From Klebsormidium nitens (taxonomy: Eukaryota; Plantae; Klebsormidiophyceae), in NCBI GenBank assembly GCA_000708835.1, contig DF237104.1, positions 62,001-126,000 on the forward strand: 64,000 nt of DNA, read 5' to 3'. A model generated the notes under the pieces. The model was given only the letters and a program-made list of their open reading frames with translations, was not told the DNA's origin and ran no database searches. Shown piece by piece: positions 11,180-64,000 of the stretch. Within the stretch, counting starts at the first letter, position 1. Each line of letters starts with the position of its first letter. The translations under genes were made by a program, and so were the position numbers.

Positions 11180-14100
11180 ATGGCGCTCCGCCAGCGCACG
11201 CCAGCTGTCCAGCTGCTAACAGTGGTTTTGCTCGCGCTGACAGCTGTCAGCCCCATCAAAGCGCAGTTTGGAGCAAACGGCACGTTCCACCCGGGCGGGG
11301 TGACCAGGAACTTTTCAGTCACTGGCCCATGGAGTGAGTGGGGTCATTTGCCCAGATTTCTCGACAGCATGGAGATCTATGTGTCATGTTCTAGCTCTTC
11401 AGGTCTCTGTTCTTCCTTGCTTTTTCCTGCTCCAGATCCTGTCGATGGTCAGTCACTGTGGCACCTTGTCAATGGATCAGAATCTTGTAATGGAGCAGCT
11501 CATTCAATGTCATCTGTGTCCAGATGAGCAGAATGAAAGCGGCTGCTTTTTGCAGCTCTTCTCGCCTCTGTTTCGTTTCACTGCGTGCTGATTGAGCAGG
11601 CAGCCAGTTTGTCTATCTCAGGAGCTTTGCATCCCTACTGCCACCAGCTTGAGTGACAAATCTGTTCCTCTATTGGTATTCTTGACTCGGATAAATAAGA
11701 GGGAGAAACTTCAGCGTTCTTACATGGCACGATGTCTAGACCAGTCTGGTTTCCCGAACATAACCTTCCAGAAAGCCCAGTAGTCAGGCAAACCTTACTA
11801 GATTTGAAGACAGCTGCTTTAGATCAAAGGAGTCCTATCCAGCCTTCTCCGGAAGCAGATTCTGTATTGCGAAGCCAGCTAAACCGTCTTTTAACAAGAG
11901 CATCTGTGTCTGTTGCAATGTACTTAACCCCAGCGCTGTTTTTTTTCAGACTTCATTGACACTCTGTCCCTGAACTACACCACCCAAGCCCTGCCCCAGT
12001 CCTTTGCGCGGGCGCAGTGTCAAACCGGGCAGCCGGCCTACCCTGTAGTGGAGGCGACCATTGATGGGGTGCAGCAGGTATGCAAGGTCAACTCGAAGCT
12101 ATGGGCTTTCTGTAGCTGCACACTCTTCTTGGGCATCTCCTAGAACAGCATAACCTTGCAGTGTGACCAATCAACGGATTTGAGTGGCTTGCTTGTGGTC
12201 AGATCTTTGGACCTACCCAATCCGCTCTGCGCCCCACTAGAACTTGGTCGTCAGGTCTTCCTCCCTTGGACCAGAAGACTCCAAACGACCCCTTCCAAGT
12301 TTGCCATTCACTGCACCCTCTACACTTCGGACCCTCACTCAAAGCCTTGCAATTTGGCCGCCACCTCTAGCTTTGTCAGGTGACAAAAAAAAGTGGTTGA
12401 AGATACTTCAAGTCAGTAATTGTCGAGTTACTTCAAGCGAGTGATTGGAACAATCAGAATGGGTTCCAACCTCAGCCCCTCAAAAAGACTGATGGTTACC
12501 AGCACAAGCCAAACCGACACAAGGGACCAACGAGAGGTCAGCTTACCCATTTTTTTCTTTTTTATTCAAGTCATTGAAGTCAGTACCTCACACTTCTACC
12601 AAGTGGATTTTAGTGGACTCGCGCAATCACACACATTCCTGACTGCTCTGACCGCAGGCAATGCTGGCGGAAAATCTGACATGCAGCCAGCTGATTGCGG
12701 CATATGTCCAGGTAAGCTCTGATTGGTCGTCCATTGCAACAACGTCCTCAATGTGCCGACAATCTGTAGAAGCTGGCCATTAGGGGCCACCAAAATTGTG
12801 GTTGAGTATCATGCAGTTCGTTGAGAAAGACCGTTCTGTGCTAGCTCGGTTGAATTGTGTTCCTGTGAATTGAAAGTGCCGCTTGAAACGTATGGACGTA
12901 GATCCATCACTTGCCGAAATCATCATTTCTGGAGATTGACCCTCCGGCCCATGTCTGAGGTTAGTCGGCCATCTGGCGGACATAGACGAATCGAAGCAGT
13001 CAACATTCAACGTCCTGAACATACCACAACTGCCGCTGCTCTGCAGCGATAACGCTTTGCACTGCGAGTCGCCTTTCACCCGCGTGCACAGCGCGCCCCA
13101 CGTCTCGTCAATCCCCTTGACTTCTCGAGTTCTGACGCCACCTGCTGTCACCACCACCTTCTTATGAGGCCATACGTCACCTTCTCCGGATCCTTCCGCA
13201 GTGCATCTTTCACTACGACAAGGGCACTGGCGGTCACTTCTCACCCCATCTCTTGACGTCACCTCCACAGCGTATCTCTGGCTATGAAATGAGTACCGGC
13301 GGTCACTTCTCACCCCATCTCTTGACGTCATCCTCTGACGTCACCTTCTCTATCCGCAGCGCATCTCCTACTACGACCGGAGCACTGGCCGTCACTTGCC
13401 ACCCCACCTTCTGACGTCACCCTCTGACGCCACCTTCTCTTTCCACAGTGCATCTCTTGCTACGACAAGACCACCGCCGCCACTTCTGATCCCACCTGAC
13501 CCCACCTTCTGACGTCACCTTCTGACGTCATTTTCCTTCCTTGCAGCGCATCTCCTATTACGACCAGAGCACTGGCGTTAACGCGGTCCGCCTGGTCATG
13601 CCGGACCTCGCAAACGTCACTGCCGCAAAGGACGCGCAGCTGGCGGCCGTCATTGCTTCCGGCAACAACACGCTCCCCGACCTGTTTTGCGTTCCCTTCG
13701 TGGTTAAGGATAACTACGACACGGTTGGCGTCGCGACCGCGAATGGCGCGGTGGCGCTGCTCGACAACTTCCCCTCAGCGGACGCAACCATTGTGAGAAG
13801 TCACCTTTCTACATCGGTTTCATTTGTTTGATGGTTTGCGTTTCGTTGGTGGTTAAGGATCATTACGACACGGTTGGTGTCGCGACCGCGAATGGCGTGG
13901 TGGCGCTGCTCGACAACTTCCCGTCGGCGGATGCGACCATAGTGAGGAGTAACGGTTTGTGATAGGTTCTATTTGTAGAATCGTTTGCGTTTCGTTCGTA
14001 TTTAAGGATAACTACGACACGGTTGGGGTGGCGCTGCTCGACAACTTTCCCTCAGCCGACGCAACCATTGCGAGGAGTTCACTTACAAAACTGTTCTTAA

Positions 14101-17100
14101 AAAGCGGACTGTTTTCTGTGAACCATCGCGCAAGCGAAGCTGCCTTTTGTTCCCGAGCGATGGGCTGGGCCGCCTCTCATTTGGTTCCGGTGAGACTTCC
14201 AACTGAAAGGTTTCACTGACAATCGCTCAGGTAGAGCTCAAATGGCTGCGGTTTAAGACGCGTTCGTTTTGCGTAAACCCAGGTGGCATAGATAAAGGCT
14301 TTGGGCGCAATAAATATGCATCTTTGTTCTGCTGAAACAAGGCCAAGACAACCCTTCCGCCTATTGTTCAATCTGATCGGGTCTGGCTTTGGTTTAAAAC
14401 GCGTCTTTTAATCAAATCCAGGTGGCACAAATCAAGGCTGCGGGAGCGGTAATTTTGGCCAAGGGCAATATGGCCGAGTGGGCCTTCTCGAACGCGGTCT
14501 CCATCGGCTCTGCTTTCGGCATCGTGCGCAACCCGTACGACACCGATCGCGTCACCGCAGGTTAGCAGTTATTAACCAAAACCCGAAACCCTCGGATGGT
14601 CAAAGTTTTGCAGAATGCGGTCGAAGCTCGAGCCTCGGGCCTCGAACCTCTGTCAAGCGCGGAGCTCACTTCAATCCTGATGCGAGAGAGTCTCGCACCG
14701 CGTGGGGTGTCGAAATGAATCGCCAGAGACAAAGTTGGCCATCAGAGCTGCGACAAGCGGGTATCAGAACATCTCAATTGTGAGACTCCCCTTCGACGCG
14801 ACACACTTCAAAGCACCAGCTAAATCGCAATATCGGACTTTCGCCAATGCAAGCCGCTCTGGCAGCCGTTCTTTGAAACACGTGACAACGCACGCAGGCA
14901 GCAGTGGCGGCCCCGCGGCCGCGGTCTCCGCGAGCTTCGCCATGATTGGGCTCGGTACGGACACGGGCAACTCGATCCGCGGGCCGTCCGGCCACAACGC
15001 GCTGGTGGGCATTCGCAGCACCATCGGCATCACCTCACGGTGAGCAACTCGAAAACTGACCCGTAGATCCTAAACCCTAAACCATGAACGTTAAAACAGG
15101 TTTCTAGGCCTTTTGAAACTCGGGCACGCGGCGGCGATCAGTTGGCGTTACTTCGTGATGAGCGTCGGGAGGTCTTAGAAGCATAAATTCGCGGTATCTC
15201 TCGATCCAGGGAAAGAATCCAGGGTTCTGGTTACCGTATCGCCGTTTACAGTTTCAAGATTTGAGGAACACTACGTGGATGTTCGAAATTTGTTCCTTTT
15301 AACATTAGCTACGAATCAGGTACGACTCTGCCAAGCGACAGAGAACGCCCACTCTTTGCCGCTTGTAAACAAGACAGTCCGCCACATGCTTTTGATAAGA
15401 AAGACGAGCAGGTTTGGAACTGATATTCCAAGCGACAAAGAACGCCCACTCTTCGCTGCTTGTAAGCAAGACAGTCCGCCATAAATCTGGAGATGAAGAC
15501 AAGCACTTTTGGAACTCATTTTCAAAAAGTTTGATAACTGATACTGTGTGCAGGGCCGGCATCATCCCCCTCATTCTGAACCGCGACATCGGCGGGCCCA
15601 TGGGGCGCACCGTCACTGACGTGGCCAAGGTCTTCCAGCACATCGTGAGGGCGCTCGCTGACGTCACTTTGTAATTCCGTATCCGCGCGCTTAATCGAGG
15701 ATACGCGTAGTCTGTCGTCGTTCATTGGCGAGGAGCTCGGATCTGGCAGATTCTAGAAAGGGCCGCTGCACGAATGAACGGTGAGACGCTATCTTCAAAC
15801 AGTGATGCAACCGGCCGAAGCAGGCATTCCTTGAACGCGCCTCGATCGAAGCTCCTTCTTTGACGCCTTTCGAGTCGGGTTCGAATCGCGCGTCCGCAGG
15901 TTTTTCTTTTCTTGCAGACCGTGATTGAACGAGTTGCCAGGTGTTCGCAATTCTGTGAGCTTCTCATTTTCCTTACCAGGTGGGCCCCGACCCGACCGGG
16001 CGTGACGACGTGACCCTCCGCAGCGCAAACTCTACGCTTAATCCGTACGGCATCCCGTCCAACTACACGCAGTTCCTCAACGCGAGCGGGCTGCAGGTAA
16101 GCGAGATTCTCCGTTGCTCAATCCGCGACTTTCAGCTTCGATCGGCGTTTGAGAATCTACTTAAGATTTACTCCCTGAAAAGGCACATCGCTCGAGACTA
16201 AGGTGAGAGATCCTTTTCCTTCCAGGGAAAACATAAGTCTTGAAACTTTTCCTTTCAGGGAAAAGGTAACTCTTGAAAGCCCATCAAGAACTTGAGTCGA
16301 ACCTCGAGAGATTCTTCCTTGCCAAAGACTGAGATGCCGCTAGTCGCCTGACTGTGGACTATATCAAGATCGAGCGGCTGAGAAGATTCAGTTGTGTGGC
16401 AAACCTCCGCTCGACCTGTTAGGAAAGTCGAGGTAAGGAACGGGATGTGACCGCTGACCAAGGCTGTTTGAACTCGCTGCCTGCAAGCTCTTCTGACCAG
16501 GATTATAGACCGTTTGTCTAAAGGCAGAAGATCAAAAGCATCTTTACCCCCTCCGAAATTCTTTGGTCGAGTTTGATCTGAGTTAACAATTGCTCTAGAA
16601 GCCACATGCTTTCACCTCGTGGCTGCACCAGGTCTATTCTTTTGCGACGCTGCAAGCGGCGTCGGGCAGACGCCCTCTCTAACCACTTGTGGTTAACGGC
16701 GAAACCCGCCCACCGAGCGGAGCTTGACGGATGGTTGTAACCCCCTTTCGTCACAGGGCAAAACAATTGGCGTGCTTCGTAGCCTAGAGTTCAACCCGAC
16801 GACTAGCCCCGACGGCGAGATCCAGAACCTGTTCAACCGCGCCATAATGGACCTTCAGTCGCTTGGGGCGACTGTCATTGACAACTTCACTGTAACCGGT
16901 ACGCACCAGCCTCGTCTGCGCCCTTCACCCTAGACTTTCTCGCAGCTACTTGTGAAGGCAGCTGTCAAGAGTTTCGCTCACACTTCACCCCTTTGCGGCT
17001 CCTGCGGTGCTCTGTGCTATCTCACTCTTGCGTTGCAATGTTTGTGATATCTTCGTACGGAAGATATCACAAACAATCAGGGCAACTTTTCAGCTGAGTG

Positions 17101-20100
17101 TCTCTTCTGACCCCTAAACAATTTGCTGGCAGCAAGCCGTGAAAACGGACCCGGGTTTTTTGTTATCTCCCACGCATCACTTCTGTTCGCCTGATCTGGT
17201 TGTTCCAGACACTTTTCTGCGCGACAAGCTGCTGTACGGACGTACTTCCGCCGTCCTCTTCGAGCTAAAATTCCGGTTTTCTCGCTCCAGGCAAACCCGC
17301 TGAGCGAAAAGCCGTGGCACCAACGAAACAATCTTCCTGGACCGTGTCAGTGCCGAAAACGCTCGACAGACAACTAAAATGGTGACATGTTTTATTTACC
17401 TTCGCAGTCAACTCGCTGGGCGACAGTGCCGGAAACGATCAGCAGACACTGGCAACTAGAATGTGACATGTGTTTTTGACCTTTTCCAGGCAACTCGTTG
17501 GGCGACAAGCCGTGGGACGGCCGCAACAGCTGGTACGTGGGTACCGGCGCGAACGGTTCCTTTGTCGGTTTCTCGAACCCGCAGTGCGCCAACTGGATCG
17601 AAGACTTGCAGACGTATCTCAGCACGGCAGGCAGCAGTTTCAAGACGGTGAATGACATTTACGTCAGCGGCGGGTTCCACCCGTCGGTGGTTGGGAGCTT
17701 TACCAGCAACATGAGGAACCAGAACATCTCGTCGGCCAGCCTGCCAACGGCCAACGGGATTGCGGCGGTGAGGAAACGAAGGAAACGGACGGGAATTTTG
17801 AAAGCACGGAAAATAGGATGCATAAGAAAATGTTGGCATTTAAGACATGAACAGGTTATTGTGGGTAGGAGACCAAAAGCTTGGTTGCGAATGCCGACTT
17901 TTGCTTAGGAACGTATCGATTTGGGTCAATCAGAACACTTTCCTGCAAACCTCGCACGCGGCATCGCACTTGTCAAAGGCGATGCTGCATAGAGAATGGA
18001 GACGGCTTTGTGAGAATCGACCTTATTGCGAACCGGATTTCAGTGCCATTCAAGTAACCTCGCTATCGGCTTGAGCAGGCACGCCTCCAGACTGCCAGCC
18101 GACCCATTAAAGAAAGTCCTTTGTGGTTGCAGGGTCAAGTATGCACCTGCGGGGACGACTTGACAAACGTGAGTGGACCTCAGATTCTCATCAAGAGTGG
18201 TCCAAGCTCGTCGGCAGCAGATTGCGGCTGGGGCGCCCTGACGGCGGATTGTTCACATCCTCTCTGTATGTATTTTCTGCAAGATAAATCTTTACTGGAC
18301 GCTCTATCCTGTTCATTCCATTGTCAAGAGCGCCAGAAGATATCGTGACTCCGTGTCGCGGGACTTCAATCATGCTTTGCACATCCCCACCTCATACATG
18401 CGTCACCTACTCTTGCCCGATAACGGTTGGAATCGGTTGGTTCCGAGCCCGTCTTTTGCACAAAGTCAGACGCAGCTTTGCAGAGTCCGAACCGCTTTGA
18501 ACCCACCTGAACTTCGTAACTGCTTTCTTGCGGCGGTGCAGCCGTGTCGTGTCGAGTTTCGGACGCGGCTCCTGGCAGCGATGGACGCCCAAAATGCGGA
18601 CGCCCTGATCTACCCGGGGTGGGCCAACCCGGCGCGTCTGGTCGGCGATTACGACAGCCCTCTGGGCGACCTTTCGCAGATCATCCCGCCCAACACCGGC
18701 ATGCCCGGGATCGTCGTGCCAATGGTGAGCTGCCACGTGGCGCTTGTTATATGGTAATGCGGCTGTTTGTGGGGATTTGAGAAGAAAGGGAGAAGCGAAT
18801 TGTTACAATGCAAACCGCCTGACGCCGGCATGCCCGGGATGCCTGTGCCGAAAATGAGCCGCCACGTGGCTTTCGTCGAAAAGCGTCACGAACGGGGGAG
18901 GATCAGAAATTTATCGCTCGACACGGGATGCTCGGGATTGTTGTACTATCCATGGGCTTTGATTCTTCGTTTAAATACTGCGTCGCAAAAAAGCAGGGAC
19001 AGGGGACTTACCGCCGTTCTGCCGAGGCTGATCACCAGCCCAATATTGGCATGGTCAATTTCGTGGGAGATGCCACGTGGCGTGCTGGGAAAGCGTCTTG
19101 TCATATCCACCTCGTCCCTCTCGATACGGACGGGTAAAGGTAATTAGGCGGAAATGCTCAACGGCTCAAAGGCTCAGATCAACTCCAGTCAAATCAACAT
19201 AGCGGAGTTGCTTAGGTTAGTTGGCGGATGCTGATTCCTGTTTCTCCGTTGCAGGGCTACACATCCCGTGGGCTTCCCGCGACTCTACAGGTGAGCCGAC
19301 CGCCTTCTTGAAAATCCAGTCGCTTCAAGAAAATTGTTGAGGTTCTGATTTTTAGTTGCCTCGATATAGCGGGAAGGGTTTGTTTTGATGTGCGAGTGGT
19401 CTGTGAACCCCTCTTTCAGTTCTCGTCCAGCCAATTGCGTAGTGGCAACTGCTGGCCTTAAAGACATCGACCAAAATATTGAGTCCTTGGAAACTTCGAC
19501 GATGTTCGATTATGCCGCAGTAGACCTTAATGCCGGCGTCTTTCGTAGAACACTCAGTGAATGGGTTGGTCAGCCGGTCCAACTTTTCACGCCAGTCGAA
19601 CGCCTTCTTATCATCTTATCCTCTCCTTATCGCACTTTCCGCGACCTTGCCTTTCGATTCCCGCTGTGTTCTCTGTTGCTTCTTCCTTTGATCTTCGCTG
19701 AAAAACGCACCTTTTCGCGTGTGCTTCTTTCAACCTCTTCTTCCTCCAATGTCTTTTCTGAGCGTTTCAAGCTCGCGCTGCGTCCTGCAGATTGTCGCCC
19801 GCCCTTACGCGGAGCCAACGCTCTTCACGATCGCATATGCATACGAGCAGGGCACCAAGCGCCGCACGGTGGGTCGCAGTCTCTAGACCAACTTGTTTGC
19901 AATAGACTCGCCGTCTCTGGGATTATTGGAGTGAGATGCCACCTCTGAATTCCACTGCTAACTCGTTTGCACACTGTCTTATTGTGCGCGTGTTGTCGCA
20001 ATCCGATGCTACGTAATCGCACTCCGCAACCGTCCTTCGTCTCCAATCTTTGGGTTTTATTCCCTCCGTCGCGAGTAGCTGATGACAACCTGAGCTTCCT

Positions 20101-20220
20101 CAAAGCGCACAAGTATTCAATGATAAAATCTTCCCTATAATGCAGCCCCCGCCCGGTTTCTCGGAATGCACCGCCAACAGTACGTCCTCGGGCATCACGT
20201 CCAAAGAGGCCTTCCCGTAG
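11180..20220 (+). CDS. Secreted amidase-signature (AS) family amidase (Ser-cisSer-Lys triad), ~15 exons
   Basis: Approximate exons: 11180-11333, 11950-12077, 12658-12711, 13547-13792, 14422-14560, 14898-15039, 15554-15643, 15980-16096, 16757-16898, 17491-17767, 18133-18168, 18542-18724, 19255-19290, 19791-19868, 20146-20220. N-terminal signal peptide [28 protein letters not shown]. Motifs: [18 protein letters not shown] (catalytic Lys), [36 protein letters not shown] (nucleophile Ser), [56 protein letters not shown]. Many NxS/T sequons. Confidence 0.92.
13140..13546 (+). repeat. Ladder of four degenerate copies of the amidase exon-4 acceptor junction
   Basis: AG followed by exon-4-like starts at 13202, 13271, 13360 and 13449 (real exon at 13547). 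For example gcag|cgcatctccctactacgaccggagcactggc versus real gcag|cgcatctcctattacgaccagagcactggc. Six TGACGTCA motifs lie in the spacers. Confidence 0.85.
13836..14075 (+). repeat. Two copies of the amidase exon-4 3' end plus donor, inside intron 4
   Basis: Copy 1 ends ACCATA|gtgagg at 13941. Copy 2 has a 21-nt deletion and ends ACCATT|gcgagg at 14069. The real donor is ACCATT|gtgaga at 13792. Confidence 0.9.
15325..15520 (+). repeat. Purely intronic ~97-bp tandem duplication (amidase intron 6)
   Basis: ccaagcgacagagaacgcccactc...gcttgtaaacaagacagtccgcca at 15331 recurs at 15428. Confidence 0.85.
17039..17075. repeat. Perfect 16-bp-stem hairpin in amidase intron 9
   Basis: tgtttgtgatatcttc-gtacg-gaagatatcacaaaca. 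Confidence 0.9.
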
Positions 20221-21580: not shown

Positions 21581-24500
21581 TCACCTCGGCCGTTGACTTT
21601 CTCCAGCGTATATTGATACAATCGAGTCAGTCGCGCCCGCGGCTAGAAGCACTTGGTATGGGTGGAACTGGAGGCAACTGACGGGCCCTATCCGTTGCCC
21701 CAAAAAGCTGTTATGATACCTTACCATGCTGAGTTGCTCTCCAGCCATGCTGAAGACTTTGATATATTGCTTTGCGGAGCCGCTGGCCATAACCGGGGCA
21801 TGTCTGTGCACGGTGAGGGCAGTCATGCTGCCCTTGTGGGCTTCGATGGATAAGTACGACTGGCTCGCCCGCCGCATGTCGAGCAACTGGATGTCGCCCC
21901 ACACGGACGCACTCACGAGCTGTAGCAAAGAGGAGCAAAGTAAAGATTAGGGAACAGAAGGTTCTTCACTGAAAGGGCGATTCGGCAGGCAATCAAGCCC
22001 TTCTGTGAAGCTCACTGTAAGTCAAAGGAAAGCTTCACGGAGGTCATTGGATCATTATCTACACATGAGCGAGAAAGACAGTATACTGATATTGACAAGT
22101 GTCGGTAAGATCTGCGCGCACGACATTGCAATGAAAAGTGAGAAACCCGGCTTTGCACAAGCGCAAAGTCAACGAAAATCAATAGCAGAACAAAAACCCA
22201 CTGGTGGAGTACACTTGAACGAGGGAGCCTGCAATTGAGCGTAAACAGAAAAAGTTGCGTGGGCGACCAATCAAGTGCACCGACTCACCTTGGTCGGTTC
22301 TGCCCCGGGCTGGAAGTCGACCCCTACGACTTTATGCGTGTGGGGGGTCGCCGTACCGACGAGTCTGCACAAGAGACGACACGTGTCAAAGCGAGCAGGT
22401 GAAGCGAAATATCAAAAGTAAGCACATTGGGTACTAACGTTTGTGTGCTCAATATTAGCGGCTCGATCGATCCTTCCAAAACGCGTTCCTACTTATTTGA
22501 CGGGTCGAACATAGTTCGGGTGCAGCTTTGGTCACTTCGTTGCAATTGGGGAAGACCGGTTGCCCACCGCAACGTCCAGGGTCGTGCACCACTCCTCTTA
22601 ACCAATGAAATCGCCAAGCTGAGGGCTGATTCGACACACGCAAAAAAAAAACTTTCGCGCGGCTCAGAGGAGCCATCAATTCTGCAGTATGTGAACGCCC
22701 CAAACGGACGCGAAGACGCAGATAGTGTGCGGACTCACGAGTTTCGCGTCCGCATGTCGAACAGCTTGACGGACCCGTCCGCGCAACCGGCCACCAGTTG
22801 CGCTGGATGGACCTGGGAAGCGTTCTGCAGCAGCGGACAGCACCAAGAAAGAGGTAAGGGGAGAGCGAGTCAGTCAGCGCTAGTGAGATAGCTTTGAATG
22901 CGGTTGGACACATATCAAAAGCGAGAAGAGCTTGATTTACGAGCACAACTTCCTCGTGGGCACGCGTTGAATAGCTGGCATTGGCCCGGCGTATTCCCGA
23001 GCGAGAAAGCGAGTGCTGATGAGATAGCCTGGAAGGCTGTTGAACACAAACAGAGAGCGACGAGGGCTCAAATCACAAGCACAGCGTACTCCAAAAAAGA
23101 CACCTAGGAACGCGTCGATTGGACGGCTTGGCCCGGCGTGCTTTTCAATACCTGGAAAAACATTGAACCCACTGAAAGAGCTAGCAAGCGCAGGAACGCT
23201 AGATTTGCATTCCGAGAAGCCCCGCTTGAGGATCTCAGGCGTAAAATTTAGTCTTAAGAAAGCTCCTGATTTGGGCCCGGTTGATAGAACCGGGGTGAGG
23301 AACCAGAAAAGGTGGACCAACTCCGAAGACCGGGCGGCTTCGCAATTGCGCTCGATTGGAGAACCGCGATGAGTAGGGGCGAAGATGAAAGGGCGGTCCA
23401 TCCTTTCACGCTCGGTGAGTCAAGGGTGATACAAACGGACGCGTCTTCTTACCAGAGCCACGACGGACGCGTCCGTTTGCATGGGCACGCTCGCGCTCAG
23501 CATCTCCCGGTCCATGTCCCACACGTGGAGGAACGGCACCTCCCCAGAGGCGTACTGAAGAAGAGATGGACAAAAGAATGGAGTGTATTGTTTTGGTGCA
23601 CTAGAAAACGCTTCGCTTTCAAGCTTCTCCAAATTGGGCGAAGTGAGCTTTTGAGAATGGAACTTCGGGCAATCAAGTACCCGACGACAGAACGTGTACG
23701 TGCGGCCCTTTTGGAGACCCGCTGACGAGCTGCTGATGCCGCGTTCAAACGCTTTCGAAAACATTTGCACAACGATCAACAGCCTGGCAGCGTGACCGGG
23801 CGGGGAGGAAGGAACCAGAGGGGCTGAAAACAAGATTCCGATCGAACACTTTGCTGAGCAACTTATTCACCACCATCATTGGCTGGCATGGCTGGCAAGT
23901 CAGAAAGGCTTTTGGCTTTTTTTTTTAATTTTGAATTTTGTACGACGGCGGCGCCCGCATGATGCCCTTCGACAGCACAATATCCGACATAAGACCTCTC
24001 AAATTCCAATTCGTAACATCTATACATTTTAAGGTATTGGAAAATCAGATCACGAAACCTTTAAGGCAACCACTGAGCTGCTGCCAGTGGTCAACGGCGC
24101 CGCCTGCCCCTCCACTTCGGGGTTTCATAAGCCAAGAGGTTTCCGAAAAGTTTCTAAGTGCATACATCACGCATCCGCAAGAGGCGCAGGCATAATAACG
24201 TCGAACTTACGAGGCATCCGCTGAGCTGCTGCCAGTCGACGACGGCGCCGCCCGCCCTGGCGCTCTGCCGGTGCCCCTCCAGGACGTTGAACGCGGTCGC
24301 CAGCCGCTGCTTTCCCCGCTCCGCAAAGTTGCGCCACACGCGCACCGCCCCGTCGTCTGCACAGAATGTCAGCAGCTTTTGAGACGGGCTTTGGTTCTGC
24401 TTCCTGTCTGCAGACCCTCGGTTATGAAGCTGACATCCTAGGGCACCAACCAGACGGACCTCGGTTTCTGGTTTTTTTGGTCAGTAGGTGTTTGCCAAAG

Positions 24501-51288: not shown

Positions 51289-54231
51289 TTAGTTGGCCCT
51301 GATGGAATGTATCCTCCGGAGTGATTTTCCAGCGCTCGTTTTGGGGTCTGCTTCGAGCTCCAAGACGTCGAGACCCCGGACGGCCTTCTTCAGATACTTG
51401 GGATACCTGAGATTGGAGAAAGTCGTCAGCATCGGCCTCAGTTTGGAACTCCAGAAGCCAGGCTTTTGAGGGTTAGAGCTCTGGGTTATCTTAAATTTCG
51501 AGATAACAGCAATCGGTTTGCAGACACCAAGCAGCAGGTGTGGGACTTTGCGCGAGCCAAGTTTCGGAGTACAGAGGAACCAAAGACGGCACTCGTTGCC
51601 TTTGACCTGGTGTTACGTACGATTCTCGGCATCCAGCTTCAAGAGAAATCATTTCCTTTCGGACAAAAGCTAGAGCCCGGACTTTCAGCCGCCCACTCCC
51701 GACTCCAGCACAAACCTTTGGCAAGTTCGCATGCAGTTTTGACTAGCTGATGACCAACTTTGGCTACTTGAAACACGATCGTTCATACGGTCTACAACGG
51801 ACGAACAGAGTTGGATTAGGACAGCAAGAGCGTCCGTTCGGACACAGAATACGCTCGTCCGGACGTCCGGGCACCATACAGCTTACAACGGACAAACAGA
51901 GTTGGATTAGGACAGCAAGAGCGTCCGTTCGGACACAGAACACGCTCACTCGGACGTCCGGGCACTCACCAGAAGTGGTCGAAGAGGAACTTGATGGGCG
52001 CTGGGATGCCCGCGCGAAACTCCTTCTCGACGTAGTCCTTGCCCGCCCACTTGTACATGGAGTGAACGACCCAGGGACCCATCTTGGCGTTCCCGCTCAA
52101 ACCTGCGGCCTTGATAATCTGGTCCACCAGCTGCAACAGCGGTTAAGGAAGGGTTAGAGCGGTCGGGAGAAGATTGGAGGGTTCAGCACAGAATATCTTG
52201 GGCGTTGCCGGTCAAATCTGCGGCCTTGATACTGTGGTCCACCAGCTGCAACAGCAGTTAAAGGAAGGGTTACAGCGGTCGGGGAGAGATTCAGGGTTGT
52301 TGATCATGAGGAAGACTGCTTTAGTAGGGGAAGGTTAGTGGAGGTTTCACGTGGTTGAGGCAGTGATGTATTCAGAGCAGGGAGAACAAGAGGGGCCATT
52401 GTTGCCTATGTTTGTAGGCGTAGATGCAGGAGAGTCTTTCTGGAGATTAAAGTGAGTCCGTTCGTTGAGAAGGCGAGGACTAAAAGCTGCGGTCTTTTTG
52501 CGGAAAAGCCACAGCCGCTGTGCTGTTCAACGCAGGCGGCTTCCCTCATTCCCAATTATATAGTGAGACATCCGAGCGCACCAGTTTTCACCGGCCTCCA
52601 TCAAAATCAATGGAATTGCTGCAGACCCAATTTGGAATATTGACCACTATCGCGAACCCACCTGGTGATGCTCCTCCTTGGTGAACTTCTCCTTGATCAC
52701 CGGCGTGAAGAACCGCTCCTCCTCCGCGATATGCTCCCTCAGTTCCGTAGCCAAGTGGGCGACCTTCTGCCTCAGCTCCTCTGCCACAAGTCGCCTCTCA
52801 CTCAGCGATGGTTCGGGGGCCCCCCGTTTGAGCGGCTTGAAACGCAGCTCCATGGCGCGAATCTCGTCCAGCATTCGGATCAGTTCCTCGTGGTCGGCGG
52901 CCATGCGCTCGGGGATGACGTCACAGCGGGCCTTGACGGCGGGGAAGAAGATGGTCTCCTCGATGTCGTGGTGGTGGTGGACCTGCGGGGTTAGCAATGC
53001 GGGTTAGCAGGTGGTTAACTGGTTGGAGAGGGGGTTGTCACAACACTTGGGTTTGCACACAGCTCTGGTCGTAACATTGAAGCGGAGGGGCTGCAAGAGG
53101 TTGTGGGAAAGCTCAAGTGCTAATGGCCCCAAATCCAGTTAGAAAGGTCACCAATCACCTAAGTACAGTACCAGTCGGCCACCATTCATATGAAGAGAAG
53201 AGATAATTACAAGTGACCATAGAGACGGCGGCAGCAGGTATGCGTTCTGCCCCTCAAAGTATCTCCAAACGAAGCAGAAGCAGATCGAAAGGACAAGCGA
53301 AAGCAGCTCCGAAAGTTCAGATCAAGGAGCTGGTATGCAGCTCACATTGGGGTAGAACCAGTCGTTGTACCACTTGAAGAAGGCCTTGACCTTCCAGGCC
53401 TGGGTTCCGTCAAAGAAGGGCACCTGCAGCAGACGCTCCATGCGCGCCAGGTCGTTGCGGATGGGCTCGTGCGGGGTCTGCAAGCAAACAGAAAAAGGTC
53501 TCATTCAGCTTCCTTGTTGGTAGCGTATGTGCTTTCTGTTTGGATTGCGACGGCCCCCAAAATCGACGGGACCACAACAACTGACGCAATCCGGCTGACC
53601 TTGAGCAAAGGGTGTGCATGCTGCGGTATGAAGGGACTTGAAATGGTTTCCGAAGCACGAGGGTGCTCAAGGAGTGACGCTGAAGCTCCTCAGCTAAGGA
53701 ACCGATCCGCTCATATGCAACCAACATTGTCCTTCAGATTGCTTTCAGGCGTGGGGAATGACCCAATGTCTGCCCACTCAAACCTTTTTGCGGTTTCCGC
53801 TGACAACTGTTCTTTGAAAGCATATGCGGCCAGGCAGATGCACAGGCATCCCGCTTGTTAAAGTCGACCATTCAAGATTGAGTCAAAGCAGCGGACAGAA
53901 TGCTGTCAGACACATGGTGCTAAAGACCAATCCGGTTACAGCAGCTATGTCCAAGTACAGGAAGGATTTGGCTGCTACCCAGGCTGGTTACGCAGACTAA
54001 AGTTTGGTTCATTGTCCAAAACCAGGCCATAACGATGTAAAATCTGTTTACTTCTCGAGTCTGGTCAATGAACATACAACCAGCTTCTAACCAGCCCGCA
54101 ACCGACCATGGCTGATTGCCAAAAAATCATGTGAAACTCACTAGCAGCGATGCGTCTGACCAATGGGTGACAACCGGGATCACAATGGAGGTGGGGCCGA
54201 AAAATGCAGGCACGTCCTTGGGTGGCGCCAT
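51289..54231 (-). CDS. Stand-alone hemerythrin/HHE cation-binding domain protein, paralog A (~274 aa)
   Basis: Exons 54231-54142, 53477-53346, 52982-52662, 52130-51970 and 51406-51289. Protein: MAPPKDVPAFFGPTSIVIPVVTHWSDASLL|TPHEPIRNDLARMERLL...KWYNDWFYPN|VHHHHDIEETIFFP...DHEELIRML...LREHIAEEERFFTP...|LVDQIIKAAGLSGNAKMGPW...|YPKYLKK...*. It has the H..HxxxE..H..HxxxE ligand pattern. Confidence 0.88.
51790..51968 (-). repeat. ~91-bp tandem duplication abutting the exon-4 donor of hemerythrin A
   Basis: aacggac(g/a)aacagagttggattaggacagcaagagcgtccgttcggacacagaa at 51796 and 51887. Confidence 0.9.
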
Positions 54232-54844
54232 TCTTCTGCTGACGAACCCCTAGAACGCTATTAGAACTCCGAGAAGTTGAACACTCCAATGCGGGGATGC
54301 GCGGCAGCTGAATGTAGCTGTTAATGATGTCTGCTTTTTTAGCTGTTGATGCTGCTGGGTGCCGATAATGGGCAGAGCGCAAACTGATACCAAGGATGAG
54401 ACAGTGTTTGTTAAAACCAGAACTGTGAGATGAATGGGTCTTTCATTGGATGCTAGGAACTGGTGAGAAAATCTGGCAGAAGGGGCTACTGTATGTATTG
54501 AGGAAGGAAGAATCTGGTTCACTTAGCGAAGATGGAAGCTTACTTTTATCCAACTTCAGGACATGCGCACATATGATCATCTTTTCAGGCCGGCAGCCCG
54601 AAGAGTCAGGAACGCCTGCCAACCAATGGACTTTGAAGACTTGCTTCCGTGAAATGCCGTTCGCCAGCGGTCGTCATGTGGATCGTGATGATCCCTCGCG
54701 CGGCATTCAAGTTTTGCCAGGTCATGCAACTCAAGTGCGAGTGTCGTCATTGCGGAAAGAGGACAACTGTACGGAAAATAAATTAGGTATGCGACTTTTG
54801 GAAATCATATACAGTTTTGGCAGCTGATCAGAAGAAACATAATT

Positions 54845-55020
54845 CTCAAGAAAGATAATAGTAAGCCAAGATAATAGTAAGCTCCGACTAACACTAAAAA
54901 CCCTAACCTATAAGGAAACACCCGCTCCGCACCCGTACCCACCCTAACCACCACCCTAACCCTACCCGTCACAGTGCGGTTACCTTACAATTATCTGGGC
55001 TTACTATTATTTTTCTTGAG
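54845..55020. mobile_element. MITE-like element, copy 2 (between the hemerythrin genes)
   Basis: TIR ctcaagaaagataatagtaagc / gcttactattatttttcttgag (21/22 match). The interior acactaaaaaccctaac...cacccgctccgcacccgtacccaccctaaccacc is shared with 47971-48133. Confidence 0.8.
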
Positions 55021-56112
55021 TTTCATAGAAACAGCTTGATCGGGATTCAGCTGTTTCTTTGTGACCGGAAGAAGCTTTCAACTTCCAAGGGACCGGTCAC
55101 CGATCTCGACACTTTCGTTCAAATTACTTCTGGATTCAATCATTGCACAAAGCACACCCCAGCTGATGACCAGACTTCAGAGTCTCCGACCACACTGCCG
55201 AATACAGTGTCAATAATTACACTAGGATCAGCAGACGAGTCCTAACACTCACAGCCGCCGGGAAAGAAAGTGCTGCTTCCGCGAAGCCTCCCCAAGAGTC
55301 AAGGCCGAAACACCGAAAAAGAAACCATTGCAGACAGCAGCTCAGATGATTCTAGACAGCTGAGCTATAGAAACTGATAGTGTGAAGCCATGTGGGTTGA
55401 ACATCTTGGGCACCCATTGACACTGGATCTTGAACCGTTGACCCATGCACTGGTCCGCTACTTCTAATGATTGCTCGGCCGGCATCCTTCTCTGTACGGC
55501 ACAGCCAGGCCCTCAAGCTCTTCCGACCCGTCTACTTGCTACAGTTGTCAAACTTTTCAGCGCGACAACTTTGCACAGTTCCCAACACAACGTCTAGCAG
55601 TACGCTCGGGAGGAGGTGCTGACTTCCAAGCGGACGAGTCACGATCACGGACTAGCAGAGCATTTACTTTTCAATGTGAGATGATTGCGCATCCTTCTAA
55701 GTTCTAGGCTATTCATGCAGTCGGCTAGCTTTTGCCCCGCTCCTTCCCCGGTCACTGCCCGCTGTCATCTTCATCGTATGAGCTACGGTAGGGGATAGGT
55801 AGCTGTCGCATTGGGTCCACGTACTTCTGGCTCTCTGTCCTCTAGCACATCATAAAAGGCTCCGGCTCTTGTGCCAGTCTGCAAACAAACTGAGCTCCGT
55901 AGGTACGTCTCCTCGAACTCTAACCCAAAGCCCGTAAACGTCCTTCCTCTCCCTTCACTCTCTCCAGAATAAGCTTCAAAAGGCAAGTGTCTTCGCTCGG
56001 CTCTCAGCAACCTCGGCATCCCGGGGGCTTCCCGCATTCAGCCTGAGCAAAGCTAATTCCACTCCCTGAAACCAATCCTCGACCCAGGCTTTCAAAGCAC
56101 CGCTCGAAAAGG

Positions 56113-58750
56113 ATGGCGCCCCCCAAGGACGTGCCTGCGTTCGCTGGGCCCACCTCCACGGTGATCCCAGCCGTCAACCATTGGTCAGACGGGTCGTTGC
56201 TGGTAAGTTGGGCGCATCTGTGATGCCAGCTGCTTATAGTAGCTTGTCTGAAAAAGGCAATTTAGGATGCTACGATTGGTTGCATTCTTATCATTGCGCA
56301 CAGGTTCCTGTCGCTGGTATGACCTGCCTTGGGTAGCTCGCAAAGTTTGTTAAGCCTGGACCTGCCCAACTATGTGTTGAGCCTGAATCGCGTATGAGTC
56401 TATACATTTTCGAAACTGTTTGGTCTATTTAACAACAGCTCAAATGATCTTGCAGGTTGCTTAGCAGTCCCCCAAAAAACGAACACTTAAAGAAAGAGAT
56501 GGACTCCGATCAGGGTTCCCTGCTGCCTTTAAAATAGTAAGCAATTCAAAAGACTTGACCAGGAAGCTTACAGAAAGGCGTCTCTTGCAGGCCCCGCACG
56601 AGCCCATTCGCCACGACCTGGCGCGCATGGAGCGTCTGCTGCAGGCGCCCTTCTTTGATGGGACTCAGCCCTGGAAGGTCGCGGCCTTCTTCAAGTGGTA
56701 CAACGACTGGTTCTACTTTAATGTGAGAGCCCCCTTGGAGCTCATTTGTACTATTGAAGAGCTTCATGACTTCGCTTTGGCTCCTCTCATGCAAGCAGAA
56801 CAGGTTGCTTAGACTCTTAATGAGCCTCCGTTCTGGCCTGGTGTTTGAAACGATATTCATCAAACAGCAGCTTCGTCTATGGAGTAAAAGATAAAGGGCA
56901 GCTCAAAAATTGGCTGTCCCTTGATTGAAGTGTGCGGCAGTAGTTCTCAGCATGTCAATGGTGAGTCAATTTTAGAAAGACGTTTTTCAAACTCCAATAT
57001 CATGAAGACTGATCTGGCACGTGCGAGTATTGCTCACTCCCAGCACATACTTATAGTCAGTGACTTGACTCTGGTTAACTTTCTCCGAAACTGATGGAGT
57101 TCCAAGATCATTGCCACCCCAACCTCTTCACAGCCACCTTCTTAAACCGATATAGCTTCACTCGAGAACGTTACTCAAGCTAATCCCAGCCGGTACCCTG
57201 CTGACGTCCCATACTGCTAACCCCACAGGTCCACCACCACCACGACATCGAGGAGACCATCTTCTTCCCCGCCGTCAAGGCCCGTTGTGACGTCATCCCC
57301 GAGCGCATGGCCGCCGACCACGAGGGGCTTCTTCACATGCTGGACGAAATCCGGTCCATGGAAGCGCGTTTCAAGCCGCTCTCTTGCGGCGCCCCGGCAC
57401 CGTCACCCTCTGAGAGGCGACTTGCAGCAGAGGAGCTGCGGCAGAAGGTCGCCCACATGGCCGCGGAACTGCGGGAGCATATCGCGGAGGAGGAGCGGTT
57501 TTTCACACCCGTGATCAGGGAGAAGTTCACCAAGGAGGAGCATCAACAGGTAAGGAGCTTTGGTGGAGCCAAGGAATTGTGCCATTTCGAAGGAATTGAA
57601 TGTGAGGACTGGAATCTGAGAGTGCTGCTTGAACGATCGCCCTTCTGCCCATGTCCCTTGGACCACGTTCTAACCTAATCAGCACCCTCCAAAGTACTGG
57701 AGGGCTTCTCCCGAGCACTTCAAATACTCCTTCAATTCAACCTTTGCCTCAACCCCTTCGCAATTCACTCTGAGCATTGCCTTGTCGCCGCGGCAACTGA
57801 TCATCCTGGGCAAGAACCCCTCAATAACCCTCTCAACCTTCCCCCGACCGCTCCAACCCTCGTTTCTTAACCGCTGTTCCAGCTGGTGGGCCGGATCCTC
57901 CAGGCGGCGGGCCTGGGCGGAAACCTCCAACAATTTGATGTCCTTAACCCTCTCAACCTCCTCTAAAACTAGTTTATTAACCGCTGTTCCAGCTGGTGGC
58001 CCGGATCATTCAGGCGGCGGGCCTGAGCGGAAACGCCAAGTTGTGCCCTTGGATCGTCCACGCCATGTACCGCTGGGCGGGCAAAGACTACGTCGAGAAG
58101 GAGATGCGGGCGACCATGCCCCTGCCCATCAGATTCCTCCTCGACTACTTCTGGTGAGTGCACGAGCGTCCGAATCTACGTGCTTGGCGTCCGAACGCGC
58201 AATGGAACTGTCCGCATCAGCGTGCTTGGCGTCCGACTGTGCGGTTGGACTGTCCGAGGAGCTTTCTGTCCGAATGCACGCGTGTGGAAGCGAGGCCGAA
58301 CGTGCGAGGGACTTGTTAGCCAGGATGATAGATCTCCAACTGCTCTGTGAACTTGCCCGCTGTGTGTTCCAACATTTTTGCCAGCTGGCAAATCGGGGTG
58401 CTGCACTTCTTGCTCATTGAGTCCTGCAACATCAAAGTCGTCTCCTCACGCGAAAAGATACTTCGAAAGTCTGCGTTCACATGCTGCTTTTGCCTGGTTT
58501 GCAGTTCCACCAGCCACTTACACGGTGAAGTCTCCTGTCTTACTCATCAATCTTCCCACCGTATTCTCGAGGGGGGAACACGACGCACATGGGTAGCTCA
58601 AGAGGGACTGATCCGTTGTGCACCTTCTACAGGTATCCCAAGTATTTGAAGCAGGGCGTGGCGGGCCTGGACGTCTTGGAGTTCGAAGCGGACCCGAGCA
58701 CGAGTGCCGGCAAGTCGCTCAAGAGAATCCACTCCCTGAAGGCGAACTAG
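56113..58750 (+). CDS. Stand-alone hemerythrin/HHE cation-binding domain protein, paralog B (~274 aa)
   Basis: Exons 56113-56202, 56591-56722, 57229-57549, 57993-58153 and 58633-58750 have the same lengths as in paralog A (90, 132, 321, 161, 118). Motifs APHEPIRHDL, VHHHHDIEETIFFP, DHEGLLHML, LREHIAEEE. Confidence 0.88.
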
Positions 58751-60092: not shown

Positions 60093-63000
60093 TTACGTGC
60101 CCTCGACTCGGATGTTCAAAAACAGCTCAATTCGACGTCCGAGTATTTCACCGAGCTCCTCCCGAGCCCCCAGAGTAATCTGCCTGCACGTCAGCAATCA
60201 AACCGGCGGTCAGGCCCGCTGGTTTACGAAGAAACTGACTGAGCTTCTGTTCGCCGTTTAACCTTCGTTCTGGGACCATGTCGTCCTAAAAAGGTCCGGA
60301 CTAAATAAGACGACAAGCCGACTGTTCCGCGAAAAAAGGTGAACGGAAAGGTAAGCGCAGAAAGGGACGGGGCGCAAACGGCTTGGTGTTTCGATCAAAT
60401 CCCTCGCTTGACTTATCGTGGAAACGGCTGGTCGCCATCAAAGGTGTCGCTCTGTGGTATCTCGAACAAAAGGTACGCAAGTCTCGGCGACGAACGATGT
60501 ACGTTCAGAGGACCAAACAAGGGCTCCAATTGACAACCTGAACTGAGGAAAAGAAAAGGGCGGTGCATTGAGGAGAGACCGACACAAGGAGGACAGTCGA
60601 GAGGGTCACAAAAAGAGAAGGAAGATAGCACCAGAACCCAAAAATCAACCGATGCCCCCCGGAAGGTTCATTTCATTGGAGCCCCCCCGCCCGCCAAGAT
60701 CGACTCGATCTTCCTCCTCTTGATCATCAATCTCTCAAGCGGAAACAAACTTTGATTTCAGACAAACAGGGAGGTAAGCGGACCCAAAAAGTCGCTCCTC
60801 GATGCCACCCCCTCTGCCCGCCGCCATTACTCTCCGACTTTATCGCAGAAAGCAAAGACACCTCCACACCGCAAGCACGTCTAGCGATCAGTGACGCAAC
60901 CGGAGACTTGCTGTATTGCAGCCCCCCCCTTTGCCCACCTCCATCGCTTCGATCTTCTTCCGGTCCACGATCCGTCCCCAAAGAAAGGAATTGAACGCTT
61001 ATATTAGCGTACTGACAATTCGCGACCCCTCCTGAGCCCTTCATCGCCCTCATTTTCCTCCTTTGTCACACTTACTCCCCCCCGTTCTTAAACCGTTCTA
61101 CAACCGTCTAGACAAACGGTAAAGCAACCAAAGTGAGCAGCAACCAGAGACTTACTTTATTGTAGCCCCCTTCTTGCCGACCACCATCGCTTTGATCTTC
61201 TTCCGGTCGACGATCAGGTCCTGCCGGATCTCCAGCACGCCGTCACCGGATTCCGCCCAACCCACCGGCTTAACCACCACCTGGTACAAGAAGTGGTTCA
61301 CTTTACTTTCTTAAACAATTGTACGTAAACACCCCATTTTAGCGTGGTTTCCCGTTCCTTCCCGTGTTTACGGTCAGAATGCGTATCTCTGCAATTCCTC
61401 GGGTTATCTGTCCCTGCCGGGAGGGGCTCGATGCTCATCATATGCTGTTTCCGTCAAACTTGCCATCGAACTTCCAAATGGCTCCTGATCTTAGACCTTA
61501 CGAAGCCTAGTCACTGCCATCCTTCGGCTCAAAATTGCGGACCACAACTCAGAACTTGCAAAACTGCAGTGGCAGGTTTGACGCGTACAGCTGAAGCAAC
61601 AGCAGGGGTAGGATTGCCAGCCTGGGATGGTAGGGTTGGTTCGGGTTCAGGTTCGGTACGGGTGCGGAGCAGGTGACTTCATAAGTTAGGTATCGGGCCT
61701 ACACTTATTTTAAGAGTCATTAGAAGTCATATAAACCTGAATTTGCGACGACTTACCTTGTACGGAATCTCTTTGTGCAGCCGGTCCAGCAGGTGCTGCC
61801 GGACGATGTCCATCGCGCGCTGCTCGTCCGAAAGGTCCGTCGGACGGCCCTCGGGCAGCTCCCAGGGCCGCAGCACGGCCTGCAGGCAAGAAAAGATTCT
61901 TATCAATCATTAAGAACAGAGAGCATCATTGCCATATGAATGTACTGATGTCATTGGATCTTTAACAGTCCATTTCGTAATTCTGGATCTGGGAGCTCTA
62001 TCTAAGGAGTACCATTTCGACATCATAACGTGCTTTCTCATTCAAGATTTGATGTTTGAGTTTGCAACCCTCCTCTTTTCCTTCTGCTTTATGTTCAGCA
62101 GGATAACCGAGGGTGTGCTTTCCGTTCGATTATGTAACTCCGCGAAGCGGTTGAAAAAAGTCGCGTGACCCTTCCGCTCGTCTCTGGACGCAAAGAGACC
62201 GCACTGTCTCTAACAGCAGCGATTCTGAGGCACAGCAAGTTGCAAAACGAGCAACTTTACTGGAAACCCTTTGCGTCCCTCAAAAGCTGGCACGTACGGA
62301 TACCTCTCAAGGAAACGAGAAGCCATCCCTACGTCCGAGTAAAGTCAGGAATGCTCCTTGAAGCGACTGTCGTATGCTTCCAGACAAGCAACTCACGTTC
62401 TTTCGGAGGTAGCGGTACAGCTGCTTGAGCCCCAGCCCGCGCTTCCCTGACGTCACGAAGCACCTGCACAAAGAGTGGTACACGTCAGCAAACCTCCCCC
62501 AATCTTTCCTTTTCTTCGGGTGAATTCGCCGATCCGATCCGATCCGATCGCCGGCCGAGCTTACGTATGATCGAACAGCAACTCTCACAAACGGCTTACT
62601 ATAAACTCGCCTTAACCCACTCTCACCGTCCTTCGACTGCTACCAAAAGTCAATTCACCTCACTGCATCATAGCCCTACCTCGTCCCAACCCTCCCCTTA
62701 ACTTCGTTCGTGACCAATTTGCTTTTAGCCTGTTAAACAAGTGCAGCGTCATCAAAGCTCGCGCAGCTCCTCCACTTCGGACAGTCCGCACCGGACGACG
62801 TTTCGTCTTAAGCCTCAGCCTGAATTCGCCTCACAACCTTCCCCTAATCGCGGCCATAACCGCCCTGCTTACCTGTCAAAGGCGTGCAGCGCCGTCAAAA
62901 GCTCGCGCAGCTTCCAGTCTCCGACGGTCCGCACATCCCGTGTCGTCCACCTAACCGGTTTGCAAACCTCACCCAAACTTTGTTTTTAAACCTCAACGTC

Positions 63001-64000
63001 ACCCTCCTGCTTACCTGTCAAACGCGTGCAGCATCATCAGCCGCTCGCACAGCTCCTCCAGTTTCGGACGGTCCGCACGCCCGACGGCGTCCACCTTGTT
63101 CAGCACAAGCGCGTGCTTCTGACCGGTCGGCAACTGCTCGCCTAGCTTGGCAATCATGCGAGGGATCCGCGGATCCGGCCTGCGTTAACACAATTCGGAC
63201 GGTCAAAATCTGGGCGCATAAGTAAAGCCGTCAGACGGTCTATGATCACTTCGACCTACATTTGAACCGTCCGCATAGAGAGTTTGGACCGTCCGGAAAT
63301 AGCTCGCCAGCTTGGCAACCATAAGCGGTATTCATGGATCAAGCCTGCCAAGGTCCGGACGGTCCGCAACTACTGCACTTGTAATCGGACCGTTCGCAAA
63401 GAGAAAGCAAAATTTGGACCGTTGACAGAGCTTGTCAGATTGCCCTTCAGTGAGACAAGCTCGGGTCCAGTGGCAAAACAGGGAGGGTTTGGGCAGTCTA
63501 GCGCGCACTTGATAGAAAGAATCAAATACCGGACCGTCCACAACAAAGAGACATCTCCCGTGCCACTCGTTACAGAATATTCCCTCAGCTTTCTTTTTCC
63601 ATGCTCGTCGACCACGACAACGACGGGACGGCAGTCCACCTCCGCTCTTTGCGCCCACTTCGCTCTCACCCCTCTGCGCTTTTTACACTTTCCTAAAAAC
63701 CAAACATACTGAGACAAAAACAATAGGCTCAGCTGAATCCCAAAGTCCTGACTTCCAGAACCTTTGTTTCTCTCCTCTCGGTTTTCCCGCGCGACGTCGA
63801 TCACAACAATGACGACATCGCAGTCCACGCCCGCCCTCTGCGGCGGATTCACCAGCTGTTGGTTCGTGGTGACCTTGTCAAAAACCAAGAAAAAATTACA
63901 ACAATATTCACATTCCATCAAACAGAACAGGCTTGATAGCATCACTATCCCTCATATTCCGGAGTTCCTCACCTCTCAATCTCCCGCGCAACGTCGATCA
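60093..64000 (-). CDS. era: Era-family GTPase with KH domain (organellar ERG-like); 3' part only
   Basis: Exons: 64000-63973 (IDVAREIER), 63179-63015 (PDPRIPRMIAKLGEQLPTGQKHALVLNKVD..., G4 NKxD), ~62462-62396 (CFVTSGKRGLGLKQL), ~61880-61758 (AVLRPWE...MDIVRQHLLDRLHKEIPYK), ~61284-61156 (EIRQDLIVDRKKIKAMVVGKKGATIK, KH GxxG loop) and 60183-60093 (QITLGAREELGEILGRRIELFLNIRVEGT*). Confidence 0.9.
61625..61715 (-). mobile_element. Truncated, diverged relative of the 47971/54845 MITE family in an Era intron (another fragment at ~46778-46830)
   Basis: The reverse strand reads cacctgctccgcacccgtaccgaacctgaacccgaaccaaccctacc, sharing the core gctccgcacccgtac. Confidence 0.55.
62725..62960 (-). repeat. 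Two copies of the 3' end plus donor of the Era NKVD exon
   Basis: cctgcttacctgtcaaa at 62865 and 63007, and a third diverged unit at ~62729; period ~142 bp. Confidence 0.85.

Follow-up and report, generated by a model that had tools for sequence, protein, structure and literature searches.

Tandem copies of splice junctions inside the adjacent introns of Klebsormidium nitens

Which process fills introns of the alga Klebsormidium nitens with copies of their own splice junctions? The question is raised by a stretch of 64,000 nucleotides (assembly GCA_000708835.1, contig DF237104.1, positions 62,001 to 126,000; here the window, with a GC content of 52%). An earlier note, made from the letters alone, had described degenerate copies of the intron end and exon start upstream of real acceptors, or of the exon end downstream of real donors, in six genes, and had proposed a lineage-specific, recurrent junction-duplicating process that builds introns and creates many decoy splice sites. 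Nine genes with open frames were rebuilt in the window, with 63 GT-AG introns of 557 nt on average; among them are an amidase gene (11950–20220, forward strand), a RAPTOR gene (21581–36450, reverse strand) and an aspartic protease gene (41682–49386, forward strand).

Junction copies and their structure

The presence of junction copies inside neighbouring introns was confirmed. Exon-only probes, i.e. the first or last 40 exon bases, were matched to the adjacent intron and to all other introns as null, much as the earlier note had proposed. At 23 of 124 junctions the adjacent intron matched better than every null intron, with about 2 expected; probes from the far end of the exon and reverse-complement probes did so at 3 of 124 each. 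A catalogue compiled with junction probes (null rate below 0.1% per probe) lists 37 copies, distributed over 23 of the 126 junctions, where more than 25 cases in 64 kb had been claimed. About one in five exon borders has copies, one to four per border, and the copies span 4440 of 35070 intron bases (12.7%). Their median spacing is 142 nt (interquartile range about 125–163), which is nucleosome-sized by length alone. Polarity is strict: copies of acceptors lie upstream of the real site and copies of donors downstream, and each copy resembles its own adjacent junction only. Self-BLAST and Tandem Repeats Finder (TRF) returned dozens of direct repeats of 70–350 bp close to exon borders, and shuffled nulls gave 0–2 matches compared with 59 observed.

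Every position listed earlier was recovered within a few bases, some of them weakly: 43805 is a 14-nt exact match with a period of 33, about 18950 and 19066 have null fractions of about 0.01, and 60680 has one of 0.002. The copy at 63610 derives from the copy at 63774 and not directly from the exon. Further cases were found at 17289, 31328 and 43095, as well as at 6816, outside the range read earlier, while candidates at 42757 and 6672 failed the null tests. Counted by place, the 46 kb of coding spans contain 28 arrays and the remaining 17.6 kb contain 1 (p = 0.001); taken by themselves, the purely intronic arrays gave p = 0.09 for confinement to gene spans. In RAPTOR, junction copies are restricted to introns 9–20, with none in introns 1–8, and CpG and GC content fail to account for this restriction. 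CpG observed/expected ratio and distance from the first exon showed no significant link to the copies (p 0.16–0.21), and GC content a weak one (p 0.02–0.06).

In 21 of the 37 nearest units the intron half was duplicated as well (z > 3). Identity was about 0.6 for intron halves and about 0.83 for exon halves, showing that the intron half decays faster. The youngest units, few in number and with partly eroded seams, are exact head-to-tail copies with 0–3 nt of microhomology at the seam; judged from the sequence of this small sample, such low microhomology fits fill-in of staggered breaks better than slippage between long repeats. Similarity to the real junction was higher for the nearest than for the most distant copy in each of the 15 multi-copy arrays, multi-copy junctions made up 15 of 38 compared with 10% under a Poisson distribution, and breakpoints and spacings vary within arrays (143/86/142; 163/162/86), whose copies are 65–92% alike. 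Taken together, this order, the surplus of multi-copy junctions and the varied breakpoints indicate that the same junction duplicates repeatedly and that older copies are pushed outward. The arrays do not behave as homogeneous minisatellites with one fixed unit. Whole-exon tandem duplication and mutually exclusive exons were rejected, since far-end probes matched at chance level, 44 of 47 inserts contain stops and no inclusion was seen in the protease RNA. Introners or other transposon-derived introns were rejected as well: no dispersed family was found, and the copies resemble only the junction beside them.

Relatives of the window carry arrays of their own. In the closer relative (0.33 substitutions per 4-fold site) we counted 25 copies at 15 junctions, with the same restriction to RAPTOR introns 9–20. 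Several of its copies are missing from the window, among others at the acceptors of RAPTOR introns 16, 17 and 18, at the donor of RAPTOR intron 20 and at amidase and hemerythrin acceptors. Conversely, the copy in RAPTOR intron 11 of the window is absent from this relative, whose intron measures 350 nt compared with 779 nt in the window. The distant relative (0.96) has a young triple array of 164 nt at the acceptor of RAPTOR intron 11 and two further arrays. Such lineage-specific arrays in two relatives bear out a recurrent, ongoing process. Among orthologous arrays of the two close lineages several periods match; counts of shared derived positions settle neither shared nor independent origin.

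The same test was applied to RAPTOR orthologues on metagenome contigs, with taxa judged by protein motif and GC content only, shorter introns in the controls and three related Klebsormidium loci. Matches were obtained at 11 of 116 exon edges in Klebsormidium, 1 of 110 in chlorophyte-like and 0 of 42 in land-plant-like sequences (p = 6e-4); three further chlorophyte-like cases were seen by eye. Junction copies are, on these sequences, several-fold enriched in Klebsormidium and not exclusive to it. The claim of lineage specificity thus stands as an enrichment and falls as a confinement. Chlorophyte-like RAPTOR duplications across junctions are located at L037 4932–5263 (also in L035 and L038), L034 5456–5677 and 8702–8815, and L031 13624–13830.

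Introns with copies are 675 nt long compared with 501 nt for those without, and 453 nt after removal of the copies, which leaves no difference (p = 0.94). RAPTOR intron positions are identical in the window and in both the closer and the distant relative. No new intron could be traced to junction copies in RAPTOR of the three lineages, and an extra intron in a relative's amidase gene is unlike its flanking exon. The idea that the process builds introns therefore applies to their lengthening and not to the gain of new ones.

Junction excess over purely intronic duplication

The window and the closer relative together contain 30 independent junction-spanning arrays and 9 purely intronic ones. 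A null model was set up in which duplications are placed at random, exonic events are purged and the real exon is frozen, with calibration on the decay of orthologous introns. It predicts a junction share of 0.40–0.44, far from the observed 30:9 (p about 1e-5). Slower decay of exon-derived sequence raised the expected share to 0.56–0.60 (p 0.007–0.02), and with extreme decay settings it reached 0.68–0.75, where the excess was not significant. An exon-blind count, which disregards exon bases, gave 15:9, where each setting predicted a share of 0.27–0.28 (p = 4e-4, or 0.002 with two left out). The period also differs by class, 142 for junction-spanning and 95 for intronic arrays (p = 5e-4), and two of the nine intronic arrays start exactly at the donor GT without any exon bases (51784; 47959–48540).

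These numbers bear on the best-surviving rival explanation, in which gene bodies are duplicated without regard to position, exonic events are purged and the junction excess is only apparent, owing to the frozen copy and slow, exon-like decay. Purely intronic duplications do exist, intron halves do decay faster, and simulations with fast intron decay raise the expected share to 0.68–0.75. The exon-blind count, the difference in period, the two arrays at donor GTs and the calibrated decay models, which still gave p ≤ 0.02, all speak against position-blind duplication, and we consider it rather unlikely. Junction bias looks partly real, with survivorship and slower decay explaining another part. 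A junction-duplicating process in excess of the intronic rate, as claimed earlier, is upheld in most null models and lost in the extreme decay settings; a dedicated system is not, because similar purely intronic duplications occur and the excess is in part a matter of survivorship.

Fate of the copied sites and origin of the arrays

Use of the copied sites was tested with assembled RNA contigs from four studies over the protease stretch 42480–48440 (5961 letters). Five RNA joints were found at depths of 230–2500, all at exon-proximal sites, and no joint at any copied site of this stretch appeared in the contigs. Retained-intron contigs (44525–47785, protease introns 4–6, deepest run of one study) reached 0.4–1.4% of the spliced depth and ran through the intron 4 copies unbroken. 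A joint at 48440 that seemed to go back was an edge effect of the tested stretch. Splicing at the intact copied sites would lead to a stop or frameshift in 46 of 47 cases, so that RNA decay could hide misuse. The exception, at 45246, keeps the frame (+156 nt), is free of stops and follows a good pyrimidine tract, and it was unused in the contigs. In-frame units are not avoided (15 of 47).

An intact AG was found in 37 of the 39 acceptor copies, an intact GT in only 9 of the 15 copies of donors (Fisher p = 0.004). This contrast is suggestive: GT should be lost more often if a decoy donor does mild harm and a decoy acceptor none. The median score of acceptor copies is 8.0 compared with 8.4 for real acceptors, a value that transition-biased neutral decay reproduces. 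The decoy splice sites of the earlier note are thus strong in appearance, and their use was not seen in protease RNA of the four studies. Some copies read AG|GT (45098, 30613), and contigs of mature RNA are blind to intermediates of recursive splicing.

Retention of the AG is what one would look for if acceptor copies were selected as functional decoys or helpers, be it in recruitment of U2AF or the branch-point factor, in tuning of intron retention or nonsense-mediated decay, or in staged splicing. It exceeded neutral simulations (P ≤ 0.02), the copies score near real acceptors, and several array periods match across lineages 0.33 substitutions per site apart. On the 20 independent junctions, however, AG is kept at only 19 (p = 0.07), pyrimidine-tract scores are consistent with neutral decay, arrays are gained per lineage while orthologous introns manage without them, and the RNA has no joints at copies. 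We regard selection for such a function as improbable and treat AG retention as a lead.

Slightly less probable still is local gene conversion, a form of concerted evolution in which the constrained junction would refresh the exon part and the AG of fewer and older duplications. High AG retention would agree with this, as would exon halves that are 85–94% identical beside an unalignable intron half and the resemblance of each hemerythrin copy to its own paralogue. Yet presence or absence of arrays and intron-length differences between lineages require new insertions, conversion would also homogenise intronic pairs and so leaves the junction excess unexplained, and breakpoints differ within arrays. 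Assembly artefact or chance similarity can be dismissed, even though collapse of the copies had been named as a possible refutation: the copies are 65–92% and not nearly identical, RNA contigs bridge protease introns 4 and 6 without differences from the window, the independent assemblies of the relatives show the same pattern with their own arrays, and shuffled nulls stayed far below the observed matches.

We lean, with no great confidence, towards explaining the copies as neutral remnants of a tandem duplication that occurs often in gene bodies, is biased to junctions and is tolerated through exon-proximal choice of splice sites. Fill-in and rejoining of a staggered break, or of two nicks, would leave a tandem copy with little microhomology; such duplications would be of about 80–200 bp, occur at the DNA level, head to tail, and lie inside transcribed genes. 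Copies that are wholly exonic or hold a whole exon would be purged, in line with established genetics. Where the unit spans a junction the spliceosome would pick the site beside the exon body, as it did in the protease gene, and the extra unit would join the intron, with rare misuse nearly always ending in a stop or frameshift. The same junction then duplicates again, as the order within arrays shows, moving older copies outward while the intron grows. Junction duplications would form or survive about 2–4 times more often than intronic ones; part of this surplus stems from the slower decay of exon-anchored copies and the remainder probably from a genuine positional bias. Both an exon-definition-like choice of sites and a junction bias in formation are features that we infer.

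Several points weigh against this explanation. The break-and-repair step is likewise one that we infer. The raw junction excess vanishes (p 0.15–0.47) if intron DNA decays 1.5–2 times faster than exon-derived DNA, and the exon-blind test, with 14 acceptors among its 15 cases, is not free of bias, since the intron ends at acceptors are under partial constraint. The RNA evidence consists of assembled contigs from one gene, from which rare forms are dropped. Finally, AG retention lies above the neutral expectation of about 0.80 and is not predicted by pure neutrality. A bolder reading is possible and in our view doubtful: a process coupled to splicing or chromatin would preferentially duplicate stretches of roughly nucleosome size across the exon–intron borders of transcribed genes, would have been at work over a divergence of about one substitution per site, and would have its copied acceptors kept intact and not purged, which would make the copying of junctions a main route of intron growth.

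Junction-spanning minisatellites with 5′ pseudo-sites are known from human F7 IVS7, CBS intron 13, IFI6/6-16, LMNB2 and PDGF (PMC1557585). As in the F7/CBS type, the first unit crosses the exon–intron border, the site recurs within the intron as head-to-tail repeats, and the pseudo-sites are normally silent while the exon-proximal site is used (here in contigs of one gene). Unlike that handful of homogeneous, copy-number-variable, donor-side arrays of 31–100 bp (PMC1557585), the Klebsormidium arrays have units of about 140 bp in 1–4 copies, are heterogeneous in breakpoint and age, lie mostly on the acceptor side and occur at about one fifth of junctions. Tandem genomic duplication is an accepted route of intron gain (the Rogers model; PMC3443670; PMC4974935); in the potato RdRp case the new copy took over its 3′ splice site, pyrimidine tract and branch point from the parent sequence (PMC4974935). 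The raw mutation and the involvement of splice signals are the same, whereas here the copy is absorbed into an existing intron and positions remain unchanged. Internal gene duplication (Gao and Lynch 2009, cited in PMC4974935 and PMC2809761) similarly comprises common small intragenic duplications touching splice sites; as presented by the citing papers, it includes no serial junction-anchored arrays at such density and no junction excess. Small tandem duplications from staggered or adjacent single-strand breaks (PMC8355091, citing Schiml 2016) are also head-to-tail with little microhomology, a likeness based here on sequence, and that account, as far as it goes, describes no link to splice junctions. 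Introners (PMC9860276) are likewise a lineage-specific process that reshapes introns; they are mobile, belong to one sequence family and make new introns, whereas the Klebsormidium copies come from their own locus and make none. No published description of the density, serial polarity or junction excess in Klebsormidium was found in a search that covered mainly openly available papers.

The arrays represent a route of intron growth without transposons that can be read event by event. They also provide natural pairs of splice sites identical by descent, with known age and spacing and probably thousands per genome. An early-diverging streptophyte thereby offers direct tests of exon versus intron definition and of the choice of 3′ sites. 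Should the excess at junctions persist among young events, it would follow that gene structure influences where duplications arise. In this model alga the copies can also lead gene-prediction programs and short-read aligners astray.

Arrays and neighbouring features along the window

Pfam was run exon by exon, and joined coding frames served for reading-frame and divergence checks. Single exons support the amidase, Raptor_N/WD40, aspartic protease (TAXi_N/Asp), Hemerythrin and TFIIA-gamma assignments; the names Era, KRTCAP2 and PKD2 found no Pfam confirmation in these single-exon searches, and protein searches by single exon yielded few relatives. A putative 32-nt exon of the PKD2-like gene was dropped on frame grounds. 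The KRTCAP2-like gene (reverse strand) has a donor copy at 6799–7033 with a period of 168 and its GT lost.

The amidase gene has 14 coding exons, two of them with Pfam Amidase matches, and includes two conserved exons of 36 nt (18133–18168 and 19255–19290). On its forward strand, intron 2 holds an acceptor array (13130–13577) with copied AGs at 13200, 13269, 13358 and 13447 before the real AG at 13545. Intron 3 has a donor array (13683–14078; real GT at 13793, copies at 13942 with GT and 14070 with GC) and an acceptor copy (14243–14457; AG 14281, period 139). An acceptor array lies in intron 8 (17200–17528; AG at 17406, 17289 and, weakly, 17207), and a donor array follows the exon at 18542–18724 (18686–19085), in which the copy at 18854 has lost its GT and those at about 18950 and about 19066 are weak. 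The extra intron of the relative's amidase gene, a GT-AG intron of 399 nt (L004 3196–3594), falls within the window exon 17490–17767. A direct repeat of 9 nt flanks this intron and provides its AG, and the intron bears a weak likeness to the core of a miniature inverted-repeat transposable element (MITE); its sequence makes a transposon-derived gain possible, or else a loss in the lineage of the window.

The stop-free RAPTOR model has 23 exons and 1420 codons with Pfam Raptor_N and WD40, an exon at 23151 having been dropped on frame grounds, and all 22 introns are at identical positions in the orthologue from run SRR23617307. Its arrays, on the reverse strand, comprise donor copies in intron 19 (24062–24257; period 148, GT lost) and intron 13 (28449–28603; GT 28471, period 106) and acceptor copies in intron 15 (25837–26081; AG 26047, period 128), intron 11 (29432–29689; AG 29685), intron 10 (an array at 30411–30851; AG 30613, 30699 and 30841) and intron 9 (31223–31365; AG 31328, period 88). 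An imperfect palindrome of 225 bp (29681–29906) adjoins the acceptor copy of intron 11.

Five junctions of the protease gene, which has 9 coding exons, are backed by RNA. Acceptor arrays are found on the forward strand in intron 2 (43043–43613; AG 43095, 43181 and 43343, real AG 43506) and intron 4 (44810–45444; AG 44835, 45098 and 45246). Intron 3 contains a short donor copy with a 33-nt period (43772–43818) and an acceptor copy with a period of 156 (44096–44377). The youngest acceptor copy also lies here (46198–46544; AG 46304) and is about 90% identical, with a period of 165–166 and about 1 nt of seam microhomology. A copy of the exon 6 end (47087–47140) lies 477 nt into intron 6, its intron half not alignable.

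The two hemerythrin paralogues (51289–58750) are arranged divergently with identical exon structure. Each has an acceptor copy in intron 3, at 52081–52298 (reverse strand, AG 52247) in the first and at 57825–58034 (forward strand, AG 57881, Pfam Hemerythrin) in the second. The Era-like gene (reverse strand) has a donor array in its last intron (60672–61216; copies at 60911 with GC and about 60670, lost), another at 62684–63096 (62872 with GT, 62729 with GC) and an acceptor copy at 63121–63364 (AG 63346). A further donor array on this strand (63580–64000; copies at 63774 and about 63586) belongs to an exon that continues past the window edge.

The comparison class of purely intronic duplications includes a 97-nt tandem duplication at 15331–15526 (forward strand) and one with a period of about 140 at 22863–23139 (reverse strand), with others at 561, 16213 and 58168. 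Of the two that start at a donor, one is a 91-nt duplication in hemerythrin-1 (51784–51965, reverse strand, 91% identical) and the other a 78-nt array in the protease gene (47959–48540, forward strand; 48137), displaced by a MITE-like insert. This element (47968–48136) of about 170 bp, with terminal inverted repeats of about 43 bp, sits 9 nt inside the protease intron and is flanked by a 9-bp, Mutator-like direct repeat; its relatives lie at 54849–55026 and 61620–61690. Tandem duplications of 84 nt (41506–41671) and 36 nt (36481–36552) lie immediately upstream of the start codon in the protease and the RAPTOR gene, respectively, and are probably part of the 5′ untranslated regions. An intergenic element of about 890 bp (9274–10164) has 46-bp terminal inverted repeats that are 98% alike.

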